Below, in pieces: positions 34,371 to 42,589 of a stretch of DNA of 64,000 bases; positions within the stretch are counted from its first letter, which is position 1, and each line of letters opens with the position of its first letter. This stretch comes from Macrostomum lignano. Taxonomy: Eukaryota. The notes beneath the pieces are model-generated. The model had not been told where the DNA came from, searched no databases, and was given only the letters and a program-made list of their open reading frames with translations. The stretch is from NCBI GenBank assembly GCA_002269645.1, contig NIVC01001201.1, positions 62,001 through 126,000 of the forward strand, read 5' to 3'. The translations under genes were made by a program, and so were the position numbers.

Positions 34371-35509
34371 CTAGCTGTCTTAGTTGAGTCCATTGCATGG
34401 GTAAAAATGATGTACTTAAATTTATTTTTCCTACTAACAGTAGAAATGTTAGTAAAATTCCTATTTTTAGAAATTTTGACGCCGGGAAAAAATGAACAGC
34501 GACCCACCTCATTGAGAGCAGCAACGATGGCCGCCTTCGAGCGGCTGGTGCCTAGCCGTCGCTCCACCCCGCGGATGACGAAGCCGCACAGATGGCACTG
34601 CGACCCCGCCCTGGCGGCCTCGGGCCGTCTGGTGGTTGTCGGCGGCGACGGCAAAGGCGGCTGCTGCTGCGGAGGCTGCTGGCAAGCGCCCAGGGTCTGG
34701 CAGACGATGGTCGGGTCTAGCTCGGTAGAAAGCAGCTCAAAAATAATCGACAGGTACTTGTCGATAGCGTTTGAGCACTGGAAGATTTGGAGCAGGTGAG
34801 GTCATCCTATGAGTTGGTGCAATCTTTTATCAGAATCCACGCTGCATGCATCACCTTTTCGCGTTCCCTCTTCGCTAACAGTTGGCACGCGGTCACCCTC
34901 AGCAGCGCATGCAATGGCGGGTACAGCACGCCTGTGTAGCATGAGACAGACTAGGCCTACGGGCTAAGGTCTGCGATCCTACACACCTGCACCCCCTCTA
35001 TTCTGGTGCAGGAATGGCAGGAGAACTCTCTCCAAGCTGACTCGCAAGCCGACCCAGGGGTTCACGCCCCGCATGTGTTCAAGGCAGCTCTAGGGCTGCT
35101 GGACTGACTGGACTCCGGCGGCGGCAACCCATCCGTGGCCTTTTGGCCAAGTTGGGTACGGGCTCCGCCCGGAAGTGCACCTGTGCGTATCAGGTACCTC
35201 TGGCCACGGCTCTGAGGAACAGGTACCACTCTCTGACCTTAACAGGGTATGCGGCCAGTCCGCAGGCTCCGGAGGCAGTCCTCCTGCTTCCCTCAAGGGC
35301 CCAGTGTAGTACCGTGCTGATGGTCCTTTGGTTCGGCCTCTGGTTCTTCCAAGCCGGGCTCTTAGCCGGGGAGTTTCTCGGTTGCTAGCGGTCGGGCCGG
35401 TACGGGCTTAAGCCACCCCCCGGTCGCTACCTCTTGGCCTGGTTGTTGGGTTTGGGGTTACGGCCCAGCGGCTTCTCACCTTTAGTCCCCACTCGCCTTT
35501 CAGCGACTC

Positions 35510-36979
35510 ATGGAGTATTCATTTACCTCCGACACGTCCGAGGCTGCTGGAGCACCAACCGAGGTTGGCACCGCGGCCCAGCCGGACATTCGCAACACCG
35601 GAACCCCCGGTGCCTCTCAATCTGCCGCTGCCGCCGCTCAGGATAATACCGGAGTGGCTGGACAAGACAGCGGACCTCAGATTTCGAAAAAGAAGGCCCG
35701 TAGCATTGCTCGCTACAAAGCCTTTCTCCAGCGCAAAGCGGAGGAACGGAGGAATGCGAAAGCCGCCCCTCCGGCCACCTCTGAGGAGGGTGCCGGTAAC
35801 TCTGCGAACCCCGCGGAGGAGCCGACATCCGACAAGGGGGTGGACCCCGCGCGCCGGTCTGATGCGTCAGGTGCCGCCGAAGCTCCTGGTGCGGCTGGCC
35901 CCTCCCGTGACCGGACCTCTGCCCGTGTGGAAGCTCCCACGGCCGTGGAGGGATCCAAAGCGGGGGGCGCTGGCCAAACCACAAAGCCGAAGCGAACCTA
36001 CGCGGCTATGGCCAAAAGGCAGCCGGCCCTGGTTATCCAAGGCCAGGAGACGCCTCTTACGGCCGAACAGCTCGACCTTATCTGGCGCAGGTTGGACTCC
36101 CACCTGGTCAAGATGGCCTTGAGCGGCACCGCTATTCGAGTCCAAAAGACGAAAGTCGAGGACCAAGCCCTCTATATCCAGCCCACCGACAGCCAGTCAG
36201 GACAGCAGCTCCTCGAGCTGCTGAAAACCTTCGACTGGGGTACGGAGCTGGAGAACCTGTTCATCTGCAGGGAGGACGAGCGACCCCGGACACACCGGCA
36301 CCGTGCCTGGATCCCGGCTCGCAGCTGCATCACCAAGGCTGACGAGCTGCGTCACCTGCTAGTGGCTTCCAACCCGGAGCTACCGGCCAACGGTGTCGTA
36401 GTTCACGAGACCATCTCCAAGCCGGGCGGAGACGGTTTCACGGCTATTCTTGGACTGTCGGATAGCTGGATGCTCCGCTACCCGGACATGTCCATCATCT
36501 CTGTCGGGCTGTTGCAGATTCAGCTATTTAGCTTTGAGTCTGACGCCACCCGCCCACCGCCCCCGGAGAAGCGTAAGCGGGAAGTCGGGGGCTCTGCCGG
36601 GCGGAAACGCCCAGGAAAAGAAGCTCCCGGTCGTCACGACCCCTCCGAGGACGTGGACCCTGTCAGAGGGAAAGCCGCGAAAGCTGCAGCAACAGGCGGA
36701 CGTGGAAAGGGCCGGAAACCCGCCCGGACAACTATCCGCTCTGGTCTGACTCAGCGGGCGAAGCAGCTGCTGGACACCGCCAAGGCCCCCAACCGCAGCT
36801 ACCCCCAGCCCAGTGTCACCACTGCGGCCCCCCCGGAAAACCGGGCCGAGAGCGAGACTGCCGCCCAGGTAGCGACCTCGCCCTCGACCATGGAATCCAT
36901 CTGGGAGGAGCCCATGGAGCTGGAGCCTGGAGCTATCGGCGAGGCAGAAGAGGCAGCTCTCCTGCACAACTCGCCTTGA
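35510..36979 (+). CDS. LINE E1 ORF1 (489 aa, nucleic-acid chaperone position)
   Basis: Long open ORF upstream of the EN-RT ORF. Its central block (YAAMAKRQPALVIQGQ...LDLIWRRLDSHL) is homologous to ORF1 of the second LINE ([16 protein letters not shown]...[12 protein letters not shown]). Confidence 0.85.
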   Translation: MEYSFTSDTSEAAGAPTEVGTAAQPDIRNTGTPGASQSAAAAAQDNTGVAGQDSGPQISKKKARSIARYKAFLQRKAEERRNAKAAPPATSEEGAGNSANPAEEPTSDKGVDPARRSDASGAAEAPGAAGPSRDRTSARVEAPTAVEGSKAGGAGQTTKPKRTYAAMAKRQPALVIQGQETPLTAEQLDLIWRRLDSHLVKMALSGTAIRVQKTKVEDQALYIQPTDSQSGQQLLELLKTFDWGTELENLFICREDERPRTHRHRAWIPARSCITKADELRHLLVASNPELPANGVVVHETISKPGGDGFTAILGLSDSWMLRYPDMSIISVGLLQIQLFSFESDATRPPPPEKRKREVGGSAGRKRPGKEAPGRHDPSEDVDPVRGKAAKAAATGGRGKGRKPARTTIRSGLTQRAKQLLDTAKAPNRSYPQPSVTTAAPPENRAESETAAQVATSPSTMESIWEEPMELEPGAIGEAEEAALLHNSP

Positions 36980-39900: not shown

Positions 39901-40722
39901 CGGCACCTGCTCCACCGTCTTCCAGAACGAAGTTCTCGCCATCAGCTCCTGCGCCATGGAGCTGTACAATCAGCGCGTCTGGGGGAAGGAAATTACCCTC
40001 CACTCGGACAGTCAAGCGGCGATTCACGCCCTTGAGCGCACCATCACCTGCTCGCGTACAGTCCTCGACTGCATCGGGCAGCTCAACCGCTTAGGCGCCT
40101 CCAACAAGGTGTCCCTAAGGTGGATCCCCGGGCATTCGGGCCACCCCGGCAACGAGCTGGCCGATCGCCTGGCTAAGGCTGGCTCGACCGGTTCTTTTAC
40201 TGGTCCCCTGCCCGTGGCCCCCACCCCCATCGCCGTTGTCACCACTCGGATCAACCAGTGGGTGGCTTCTAAGCACAGGGAGAGGTGGGCTAACGCCCCC
40301 GACTGCCGGCAATCCCGCGCGGCTGTCCCCTGTCCCTCCCCGCCCTACGCAGGGCCCTGCTTGGACTCAACCGCAGGGACATCAGGGCGGTTACCATGGC
40401 CCTCTCGGGTCATGGCTGCTTTGCCAGGCATCGTTACCTCCAGGAGAAAATCCGCAGTGAGGAATGCCCTTTCTACCTCTCCGGTGTCGAGAATGCGGAG
40501 CACTTCATCTGTGAATGCCCCGCCTTTACTCAGGACAGGCTCACCTACCTCGGCCCAAACCCGGACCTCTCCGACGTTTTCAGGCCCGAGAATCTCTGCC
40601 AGCTCGTCCGCTACCTAAGGGCTACCGGGCGAGCGACAATCCACCTCCTGGACTCTCCGGAGGGGGACCGCGCTGCGGACGCCGGCGCCACCGGAACTCC
40701 CTGCGCGACACCGCAGCACTAG
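36976..40722 (+). CDS. LINE E1 ORF2: AP endonuclease, reverse transcriptase, RNase H, C-terminal Cys/His motif; three 1-nt frameshifts
   Basis: [24 protein letters not shown] (endonuclease); [29 protein letters not shown] (RT); [39 protein letters not shown] (RNase H); [10 protein letters not shown]. Frame breaks near 39340, 39735 and 40340 all lie in C-runs. Confidence 0.92.
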
Positions 40723-42589
40723 CTGCCCGTGGTCGCCAGGGGTTAGCGAAATGGGCGGCAACGCCTCCTCGCTGCTTCCGGACGCACGGAGCCCCCTGCA
40801 GCTAAGTCAAGTAAGTCACCCTCAGCAGCTTTGACACCTCCGCCTGCGGGCGGTCGTCGCGGACCAGCTGTCTGGCGGCTGCCACCAGCTTGTGGCACCG
40901 CTGGCAGCCCACTTGGGACAGCGGCTTCTGCGGCGTGATGGCGGACTTTGATGAGGCCTGCAGGGGAGTATAGTGGGAGTTGGGGGAGTGAGGTGGGTGT
41001 TGGGTGTTGGGGGGAGTGAGGTGGGCCTGCAGGAGAGTAAAGTAGGAGCTGGGGGGTGAGGTCGGTGTTGGGGGAGTGAGGTCGGTGTTGGGGGAGTGAG
41101 GTCTGTGTTGGGGGAGTGAGGTCGGTGTTGGGGGAGTGAGGTCTGTGTTGGGGGAGTGAGGTCTGTGTTGGGGGAGTGAGGTCTGTGTTGGGGGAGTTAG
41201 GTCTGTGTTGGGGGAGTGAGGTCTGTGTTGGGGGAGTGAGGTCGGTGTTGGGGAGTGAGGTCTGTGTTGGGGGAGTGAGGTCTGTGTTGGGGGAGTGAGG
41301 TCTGTGTTGGGGGAGTTAGGTCTGTGTTGGGGGAGTGAGGTCTGTGTTGGGGGAGTGAGGTCTGTGTTGGGGGAGTGAGGTGGGTGTCGAGGAGTGAGGT
41401 GGGAGTTGGGGGAGTGAGGTGGGTGTCGAGGATGAGATGGGTGTCGAGGATGAGGTGGGTGTCGAGGATGAGGTGGGTGACGAGGAGTGAGGCGGGTGTC
41501 GAGGGAGTGAGGTGGGTGTCAGTGGAGTGGGTATGTGTCAGTGGACCGGGGTGGGTTCGGGGGGAGGTGGGTGATGGGGGTGAGGTGGGTGATGGGAGGG
41601 AGGTGGGTGATTGGGGTGAGGTGGGTGATGGGAGGGAGGTGGGTGATGAGAGTGAGGTGGGTGCTTGAAAATAGGAGTGAATTGCTTAGTCAGTTTTGGC
41701 TAAAAGCGCAACAGCTGACCTGTAGTTGCATTAGCTGCAGCACCGGATGCGCCGTCAGCTTGGCGGGGGTGGCTGACGGCCGAGTGGCAGCATCGACAGC
41801 CGTCTGGTTGCACAGGGCGAGCAGGGCGCATAGCTGGCTCGGCTCCTGGGTTGGGAGGGGGGTTGGAATCAGCATTGAATTAGCATGGACTCCGTGTAGA
41901 TAAGACTGGTGAAATATCTTGGTAAAATATTGGCTCGGCTGCTCTCCCATGGGACAGAGCATACCTTGCTTCTTATCATTGTTTTGAGGTAGATTTTATT
42001 GCACCTGGCACAGAGCTGATATCAGAAACAGTGTAGCATAGGCAACTGTGGTGTCGTGTTGTCAAATAGCAAAGTTCTTATTTTAATGTTTTTGCTGTTA
42101 GTTTACCAAGCAGCTCACAGAATACACAGAATGTTTCTTTAAAAGCAGTGATGCAGTGCATTTCTCTTACATGATTTCTGAATTTTTCCTTTTGTCCTAC
42201 TGTCCTAACTTTTCTCTATTTCATCGTCCTCCCCTTCTCTCCTCTTCTCTCTACTTCTCTCCCCTTCTCTCCCCTTCTCTCCCCTTCTCTCTCCTTCACC
42301 CTTAAGTCACAAGTCCCGGCCGCTTCTCAACTCACAGCGCCTGACCTCAAGGCCCGCACGGCCTCAGCCAGGTAGGTTTCAATCAACGACTTGACAGCCT
42401 CCAGAGTCTCCTCAGCCAGCTGGTCTCTGGGCAGGTGAGACTTGAGCAGCTGTGCAATCTCAGACTCAGGCTGGCCAGCCAGCACGGCCCGCTTTGCGTC
42501 GCCCAGGGCGGCCCGACAGAGGCTGCAAGCCGACGAAGCCGCATCAGGTGGGGCTCTGGGCCTGAACGATTTAATATTGAAAGTAGTTA

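Follow-up and report, generated by a model that had tools for sequence, protein, structure and literature searches.

What becomes of a gene when a complete retrotransposon comes to lie within one of its coding exons? This question is raised by positions 34855-40957 of the window, that is, of the whole stretch of 64,000 nucleotides analysed here from Macrostomum lignano contig NIVC01001201.1 (assembly Mlig_3_7). The first-pass annotation had described a full-length, young LINE inserted antisense into a prosaposin coding exon, giving a tolerated null, and its coordinates and sequence claims all hold. In our reading, one copy of a saposin-like gene has very probably been disrupted by target-primed insertion of a LINE, with the canonical message lost from this copy and the loss tolerated via paralogous copies.

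Organization of the interrupted gene

The host gene lies on the minus strand and comprises seven exons. Its product has a signal peptide, followed by one SapA domain and three SapB domains as assigned with Pfam. The putative exon 0 (43853-43901) provides the ATG and the signal peptide MRVFTALGPLLFLSAF; the phase of its donor, TCG/gtgaga, fits exon 1, and it is present in none of the public models retrieved. Exon 1 (42825-42930) carries the SapA domain, exon 2 (42336-42561) encodes SapB domain 1, which has four Cys only, and exon 3 (41720-41845) contains the end of this domain and a linker. Exon 4 is split by the LINE: its upstream part (40830-40957, 128 nt), preceded by the acceptor ctgcag/GCCTCA, carries Cys1 and Cys2 of SapB domain 2, and its downstream part (34855-34906, 52 nt), which supplies Cys3 within (L)LRVTACQLLAKREREK, runs up to the donor AAG/gtgatg. 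Exon 5 (34508-34777, 270 nt) brings Cys4-6 of this domain and, after a linker, opens SapB domain 3, which is completed by exon 6 (32667-32906), where the stop codon TAA also lies. All these exons are on the minus strand. A kinesin gene neighbours the saposin-like gene.

When 40957-40830 is joined to 34906-34855 on the minus strand, i.e. when 34907-40814 and one copy of the target-site duplication (TSD) are removed, an exon of 180 nt is obtained, as had been claimed, preceded by ctgcag/ and followed by /gtgatg. It translates into ASSKSAITPQKPLSQVGCQRCHKLV...LLRVTACQLLAKREREK and, together with exon 5 (CSNAIDKYL...IVCQTLGAC), forms a six-Cys saposin B domain; the B-type pattern (CxxC...C...C...CxxxxxC, Pfam SapB_2) is found only after removal of the insert. 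In the restored coding sequence of 1,197 nt (398 aa), all introns have canonical GT-AG borders, a signal peptide is present and no further lesion is seen. Restored residues 183-263 align end to end with positions 3-82 of the solved saposin A and C chains, and SapB domain 2 of the intact paralog is modelled as four helices in a single-sequence AlphaFold prediction of low confidence. As for the beginning of the gene, an in-frame stop before the strong GTGAGG donor of the SapA exon was considered as a second lesion and rejected, since it is the upstream donor CA/GTTGCG that agrees with the public model and with the reading phase. A spliced-leader ATG at the exon-1 acceptor was likewise rejected: it would read ATG TCC TGA, and exon 0 with its signal peptide was found instead.

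The earlier assignment to prosaposin, a core lysosomal cofactor precursor, stands as regards the saposin-like nature of the protein but is too specific. As in vertebrate prosaposin (PSAP), a signal peptide and an N-terminal SapA precede tandem SapB domains, and solved saposins A, C and D can be aligned with domains 2 and 3 of the flatworm protein. However, PSAP has the architecture SapA - four SapB - SapA, whereas the M. lignano protein has one SapA and three SapB stretches, lacks the C-terminal SapA and carries four Cys instead of six in domain 1. From its sequence, we propose that the host protein could be a secreted or lysosomal saposin-like protein.

Signature of the insertion

The LINE occupies 34907-40814 (5,908 bp, 60% GC) on the plus strand, and its ORF1 and ORF2 are read from this strand whereas the gene is on the minus strand, which confirms that a full-length LINE lies antisense in a saposin coding exon. 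It is flanked, within exon 4, by two copies of GTCACCCTCAGCAGC, located at 34892-34906 at its 5' end and at 40815-40829 at its 3' end (no strand assigned). These copies are identical at 15/15 positions and constitute the longest string common to both junction regions. The insertion point falls between the Arg and Val codons of ...KLLR/VTAC.... The filled-site junctions read CACGCGGTCACCCTCAGCAGC/GCATGCAATGG and GCTAAGTCAAGTAA/GTCACCCTCAGCAGCTTTGAC, and the corresponding empty-site string is GCGGTCACCCTCAGCAGCTTTGACACC, of which a paralog variant is possible.

The termini of the element are also those of its relatives: the 5' terminus GCATGCAATGGC has its counterpart at the beginning of the related element L002, and the 3' tail CTGCAGCTAAGTCAAGTAA is common to L002 and to a second LINE in the window. 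The odds of a 15-nt exact match at the precise termini of the element are roughly 1e-9 per placement; since, in addition, these termini match independent relatives and a paralog protein is collinear over the restored junction, chance is excluded. The junctions were judged from the assembly, and one could suppose that the assembler misplaced a LINE copy into the exon, the more so as the assembly is error-prone, with only about 64% of its bases error-free according to REAPR, and as 93% of read pairs have more than one mapping position (PMC10733133). Such a misjoin, however, would not duplicate 15 bp of unique exon sequence exactly on both sides of a complete element, precisely at its 5' and 3' termini. 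Moreover, the gene model of the earlier ML2 assembly has the same exon truncation, although the assemblies behind the gene models share the same PacBio data and are thus not independent. We regard an assembly artefact as highly improbable.

Structure, affiliation and state of the LINE

The element begins with a 5' UTR of 603 nt (34907-35509), compared with a leader of 547 nt in L002. ORF1 (35510-36979) is open from ATG to stop over 489 aa and shares 51% identity with the ORF1 of L002 (525 aa); its single Pfam match, to DUF4780, is weak (E=0.022). In ORF2 (36976-40722), Exo_endo_phos_2 (E=1.6e-19) is followed by RVT_1 (E=1.6e-31), as in APE-type LINEs, then by an RNase_H domain (E=1.7e-10) and a C-terminal CCHC motif, as in the I / R1 group. 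The 3' UTR with its GTAA-type tail (40723-40814) is devoid of poly-A. All four parts are on the plus strand. Self-BLAST of the element revealed no terminal or internal repeats, direct or inverted, and the presence of a TSD together with this absence of terminal repeats is as expected of an APE-type LINE.

Judged by its domains, the element is an APE-type LINE with RNase H, placed at the level of the I / R1 / LOA / Tad group. It has in common with these LINEs the two ORFs, the succession of N-terminal AP-endonuclease, RT, RNase H and C-terminal CxxC...H...C knuckle in ORF2, the TSDs, the lack of LTRs and a short simple-repeat tail (GTAA/TAA-like) replacing poly-A, but its ORF1 is without zinc knuckles or a confident Pfam domain. 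The best solved match of the endonuclease is ORF2p of TRAS1, an R1-clade element, and the best named protein match is annotated as R1DM-like. Unlike R1 and TRAS, the M. lignano element displays no visible site specificity, with two family members in the window at unrelated sites.

As assembled, ORF2 is spread over four frame segments, with changes at about 39341, about 39731 and about 40345; tblastn with an intact relative (P0004, 1,232 aa) recovers its consecutive pieces in frames 1, 3, 2 and 1. The first break corresponds to a C6-to-C5 difference and the first two coincide with C5 runs; the frame changes at C runs could be long-read errors. The zinc knuckle reads CPFY and not CxxC, with a Tyr replacing a Cys that is conserved in 36/36 relatives, and no in-frame ATG precedes the endonuclease domain in the assembled sequence. 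With these three features, the copy as assembled is not coding-competent (autonomous), and the earlier view of a young element testifying to recent LINE activity holds in a relative sense only. An exact-protein look-up gave no record of an identical ORF1 elsewhere, the nearest ORF2 among 5.8 billion proteins is 76% identical (Logan run ERR14788467), and a literature search on M. lignano non-LTR elements found nothing specific.

Possible messages of the interrupted copy

Splicing from the GT of the upstream TSD copy to the AG of the downstream one adds a single G, as derived by hand from the sequence. This pair leaves a +1 frameshift, so that exact splicing-out of the LINE is impossible, in agreement with the first-pass annotation. 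The donor GAG/GTGTCA (GT at 40837-40836) would, as was also claimed, lead to an in-frame skip of 60 nt (20 aa). An option overlooked so far is the joining of a TSD donor to the exon-5 acceptor in frame. The TSD copy at the LINE 3' end, which is the upstream one for the gene, holds a cryptic donor AGG/GTGAC with its GT at 40819-40818 on the minus strand. Used as AGG/GTGACT with the normal exon-5 acceptor, it keeps the frame, removes 14 aa (VTACQLLAKREREK) including Cys3 of SapB domain 2, and would place the LINE in a 6,042-nt intron. The predicted mRNA junction is ...AAGCTGCTGAGG/TGCTCAAACGCT, also written ...CTGCTGAGG/TGCTCAAAC. Read-through into the LINE is predicted to give ...GTGACTTACTTGACTTAG and a 220-aa product ending in ...LLRVTYLT, with the stop 12 nt inside the element. 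We infer the RNA products actually made from the sequence and the gene models.

Both outcomes are represented among public models. The product of the cryptic donor is identical to P0001 (A0A1I8GHM1) in 366/367 residues. The NCBI model P0003 (PAA70866.1, BOX15_Mlig000809g2), encoded by 41962..40802, runs into the LINE and stops; NCBI models for Mlig_3_7 derive from RNA-seq-guided transcripts (PMC5730564). The insertion thus explains three inconsistent public models of one gene, namely a truncated one, one lacking 14 aa and one from the intact paralog. The 14-aa-deleted message may be either a real RNA or the gene predictor's way of keeping the frame. In any case, the term "null" used previously goes beyond what is shown, since an in-frame product is possible from the TSD donor and A0A1I8GHM1 is that product.

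Could the locus then still be a working gene, with the LINE housed in an enlarged intron and the 14-aa-deleted isoform as its main and useful product, perhaps of altered function? The donor AGG/GTGACT is in phase and its position +6 is improved by the insertion (C to T), A0A1I8GHM1 corresponds to the shortened product, and the antisense LINE is free of AATAAA / ATTAAA signals by which the transcript would end early. Besides, SapB domain 1 of the same protein is naturally without the Cys3-Cys4 pair. On the other hand, half of helix 2 is lost with the deletion and Cys4 is deprived of its partner, whereas the transcript-based model of NCBI stops within the LINE. A 6-kb intron is also far above the other introns of the gene (77-1,601 nt). 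The AlphaFold pLDDT of the shortened domain, about 50-70 and below 50 at the junction, is also lower than the about 58-80 of the intact P0002 domain; both single-sequence models are poor (mean pLDDT of 56 for P0001 and 46 for P0002), and this comparison weighs little. Taken as a whole, a locus still at work in this manner seems unlikely. It is more doubtful still that the insertion has remodelled the copy, the TSD donor producing an expressed, five-Cys and 14-aa-shorter SapB domain 2 that is kept as a diverging homeolog; if true, this would be a caught-in-the-act case of transposon-driven divergence between the subgenomes of a neopolyploid.

In mammals, LINE-1 insertions into exons, by which an exon is truncated or skipped or a premature stop arises, are classic disease alleles. 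The present case resembles them in that an antisense LINE lies in a coding exon and that cryptic splice sites and premature stop codons determine the product. In contrast to them, the donor sits in duplicated host sequence and not in the element, and no phenotype is expected, since most loci of this neopolyploid flatworm exist in about three copies.

Paralogous copies and tolerance of the insertion

The search for intact paralogs suggested by the first-pass annotation was successful at the protein level: the paralog P0002 (A0A1I8HIJ1) reads ...LLRATACQLLAQREREKCSNAID... without a gap over the junction. The empty site is seen only at this level, in a model that has errors elsewhere. Exact-protein look-up of P0001 and P0002, aimed at the DNA of the paralogous locus, returned neither on record, and a homologue search with the neighbouring kinesin, aimed at paralogous contigs, returned no M. 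lignano kinesins. M. lignano is a neopolyploid whose paralogous subgenomes, about three in number, are distinguished mainly by large insertions; about 70% of the assembly is three-copy, and paralogs show about 2% SNPs, whereas indels make up about 36% of the aligned length (PMC10733133). Both this three-copy state and the uninterrupted P0002 fit the proposed tolerance through redundancy.

Since polyploid genomes lose redundant copies, the LINE might have hit an already dead pseudogene, without any effect, and the public models here are indeed partial or oddly started. Apart from the insertion, however, the host copy has kept an open frame of 398 aa with its start codon and signal peptide, all expected Cys and six pairs of canonical splice sites, and just 8 aligned residues differ from the paralog protein P0002. 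A copy dead before the insertion is therefore improbable.

The preferred reading, disruption of one gene copy by target-primed insertion, could have proceeded as follows. An APE-type, RNase H-bearing LINE would have been reverse-transcribed into one genomic saposin-like copy, its endonuclease nicking the coding (minus) strand between 34891 and 34892 (...GGGTGAC^CGCGTG), in a putative order of nicks. The element would then have been copied in full, and a staggered second nick would account for the 15-bp TSD. From that point, the canonical message can no longer be made from the interrupted copy; transcription would either enter the LINE and yield the 220-aa product, or the GT of the upstream TSD copy would be joined to the exon-5 acceptor and yield an in-frame protein lacking 14 aa. 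Either outcome would be tolerated because most loci of the DV1 line are present in about three paralogous copies, one per subgenome, and the exon is uninterrupted in at least one of the others, which probably acts as a buffer.

The insertion is thus real but ordinary, given a polyploid, repeat-rich genome in which the gene has another, intact copy. It is a kind of event already known, with no bearing on any open general question, and it provides a clean, fully worked example of homeologous copies diverging by transposon insertion in the neopolyploid M. lignano. Furthermore, it draws attention to a LINE family, marked by a conserved 5' end and a GTAA-type tail, that may move at present or may have done so recently in this flatworm, a laboratory model for transgenesis and stem-cell work.

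Structure of the disrupted saposin-like gene

The insertion of a LINE with a target-site duplication, claimed in the first-pass annotation, was confirmed. The 15-bp sequence GTCACCCTCAGCAGC, the longest string common to both junction regions, is present at 34892-34906 and 40815-40829, and its two copies border an interval of 5,908 bp (34907-40814) holding ORF1 and ORF2 on the plus strand. On the minus strand, the flanks encode 30 residues followed by VTACQLLAKREREK, between an acceptor at 40957 and a donor AAG|gtgatg at 34855. As had been proposed, the flanks and one duplication copy together give an exon of 180 nt, which with the next exon encodes a saposin B domain with six cysteines; an alignment of this restored domain with the solved chains of saposins A and C covers its full length. 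The case is a hitherto undescribed example of a familiar type of event.

A full minus-strand model of the host gene was built, with GT-AG at every intron. Exon 0 (43901-43853) carries the ATG and signal peptide MRVFTALGPLLFLSAF, exon 1 (42930-42825) the SapA domain, exon 2 (42561-42336) most of SapB domain 1, and exon 3 (41845-41720) the end of this domain with a linker. The LINE-split exon 4 (40957-40830 plus 34906-34855) encodes the first half of SapB domain 2, exon 5 (34777-34508) its remainder, a linker and the start of SapB domain 3, and exon 6 (32906-32667) the rest of domain 3 and the stop codon. Without the insert, the 1,197-nt CDS encodes 398 aa, in which Pfam detects one SapA and three SapB stretches. 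The earlier label "prosaposin" needs correcting: the architecture is prosaposin-like, but the fourth SapB and the C-terminal SapA of the vertebrate protein are missing. No further lesions besides the insertion were found in this gene copy.

SapB domain 1 (minus strand, 42336-42561 and 41720-41845) has only four cysteines, the otherwise fold-typical Cys3-Cys4 pair being absent; the public model A0A1I8GHM1 likewise lacks this pair in its first saposin B domain. After the SapA exon, an in-frame TGA (42825-42800, minus) directly precedes a strong donor CAG|GTGAGG, whose use would give a truncated product; the frame-preserving donor is a weaker CA|GTTGCG, 22 nt upstream.

The window (52% GC) is extremely dense in minisatellites, with dozens of arrays scoring at least 200 (examples at 12518-14847, 32960-34365, 41050-41663, 43055-43829 and 62899-63979). 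Introns 0, 3 and 5 of the saposin-like gene are full of them; the intron-5 array is a 33-mer in 42 copies at 95% identity. A C-terminal-motor kinesin gene, annotated as a 758-aa product, has its last exon at 30546-31514 (plus; Kinesin domain, E=5.6e-50) and is convergent with the 3' end of the saposin-like gene, ~1.1 kb apart. On the same strand as the latter and ~3.4 kb upstream, a 171-aa open frame (47320-47832, minus) carries a homeodomain (PF00046, E=5e-9), where the NCBI locus annotation calls no gene. An interstitial degenerate array of ~30 telomere-type hexamers (GGTTAG = TTAGGG) lies at 25373-25560.

Public gene models and transcript outcomes

When the restored saposin sequence was used as query, the only matches were three Macrostomum lignano proteins, which correspond to three readings of the saposin-like gene. 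PAA70866.1 (BOX15_Mlig000809g2) is encoded on NIVC01001201.1 of assembly GCA_002269645.1 (Mlig_3_7, line DV1), and the 21-kb stretch around it is identical to window positions 30802-51962 in reverse orientation, which identifies the window as nuclear DNA of the flatworm. In this model, which comes from RNA-seq-guided annotation, exon 4 continues into the antisense LINE, where the frame ends after VTYLT with a stop at 40804-40802. No AATAAA or ATTAAA signals were found in the antisense LINE.

The second protein, A0A1I8GHM1 (P0001), reads ...SKLLR|CSNAIDKYL... and matches, in 366 of 367 residues, the product predicted for splicing from a GT at 40819-40818, within the upstream duplication copy, to the normal exon-5 acceptor. 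This cryptic splice would be in frame, removing 42 nt and hence 14 aa, Cys3 among them, and the LINE would become part of a 6,042-nt intron. The donor reads AGG|GTGACC before insertion and AGG|GTGACT after it. The proposal of a null allele overlooked this route. Its splice arithmetic was right: the GT/AG between the duplication copies leaves one extra G and a frameshift, and the donor GAG|GTGTCA skips 20 aa in frame.

The third, A0A1I8HIJ1 (P0002), reads ...LLRATACQLLAQREREKCSNAID... uninterrupted across the insertion site. Since eight aligned residues differ from the window copy, it appears, at the protein level, to represent the intact paralog sought, with an empty site. In AlphaFold single-sequence models, confidence is lower for the shortened domain than for the paralog's intact one, but both models are poor and carry little weight.

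Anatomy, relatives and age of the element

A 603-nt leader lies upstream of ORF1 (35510-36979, plus; 489 aa). ORF2, also on the plus strand, carries Exo_endo_phos_2, RVT_1 and RNase_H domains, and the ORF2 proteins of relatives (~1,200-1,250 aa) have APE, RT and RNase H domains. The closest relative, P0004 (76% identity), is encoded on contig L002 (Logan ERR14788467 contig 472973, 1-6492; 6.5 kb), which bears apparently intact ORF1 (525 aa) and ORF2 (1,232 aa) and starts exactly at the conserved 5' terminus of the element. The 5' starts are GCATGCAATGGCGGG in the window LINE and GCCTGCAATGGCAGGG in L002, and the 3' end CTGCAGCTAAGTCAAGT is common to both and to a second, diverged LINE at ~56.2-61.0 kb. 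Because its start and end match these relatives, the LINE is, on sequence comparison, complete at its 5' and 3' ends. LTRs and a poly-A tail are absent; the element finishes with a GTAA-type tail. Among solved structures, TRAS1 ORF2p (R1 clade) is the best match for its endonuclease, and its best named protein match is annotated R1DM-like. The second LINE (56193-60980, plus), of the same superfamily and broken, has the same 3' tail as the window element (...CTGCAGCTAAGCAAGTAAGTAA) and 65-70% nucleotide identity to it; its ORF2 pieces, in several frames, show 47-56% amino-acid identity to P0004.

As assembled, ORF1 is open and ORF2 is broken. Aligned with P0004, ORF2 passes through frames 1, 3, 2 and 1; the breaks lie close to 39341, 39731 and 40345. 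The first is a clear C6-to-C5 difference from L002; the first two fall on two of only eleven ORF2 G/C runs of at least 5 bases, and the third sits within CCCTCCCCGCCC. These homopolymer breaks can be real slippage mutations or consensus errors of the assembly, which was made from PacBio data with Canu and polished with short reads that map to several places; REAPR rated just ~64% of its bases error-free. One defect cannot be put down to this: at the second Cys position of the knuckle near the C-terminus, 36 of 36 relatives keep the Cys and the window LINE has Tyr. From the stop of ORF1 to the endonuclease domain, no in-frame ATG was found. The earlier description of a young LINE thus holds only in a relative sense: the two duplication copies are identical, no other decay is seen in the host gene, and the paralog lacks the insert.

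Probable tolerance of the insertion in a redundant genome

Line DV1 carries additional large chromosomes, and redundancy in its assembly is high. A later study found ~70% of Mlig_3_7 in three paralogous copies, which differ by SNPs at ~2.2% (1.1% coding) and by indels over ~36% of aligned length (PMC10733133). With the corrections made here to "null", "young and active" and "prosaposin", the first-pass interpretation is broadly right. Such a three-copy genome predicts many cases in which one copy carries a LINE that another lacks; redundancy through duplication or polyploidy is well supported, and the case is therefore ordinary.
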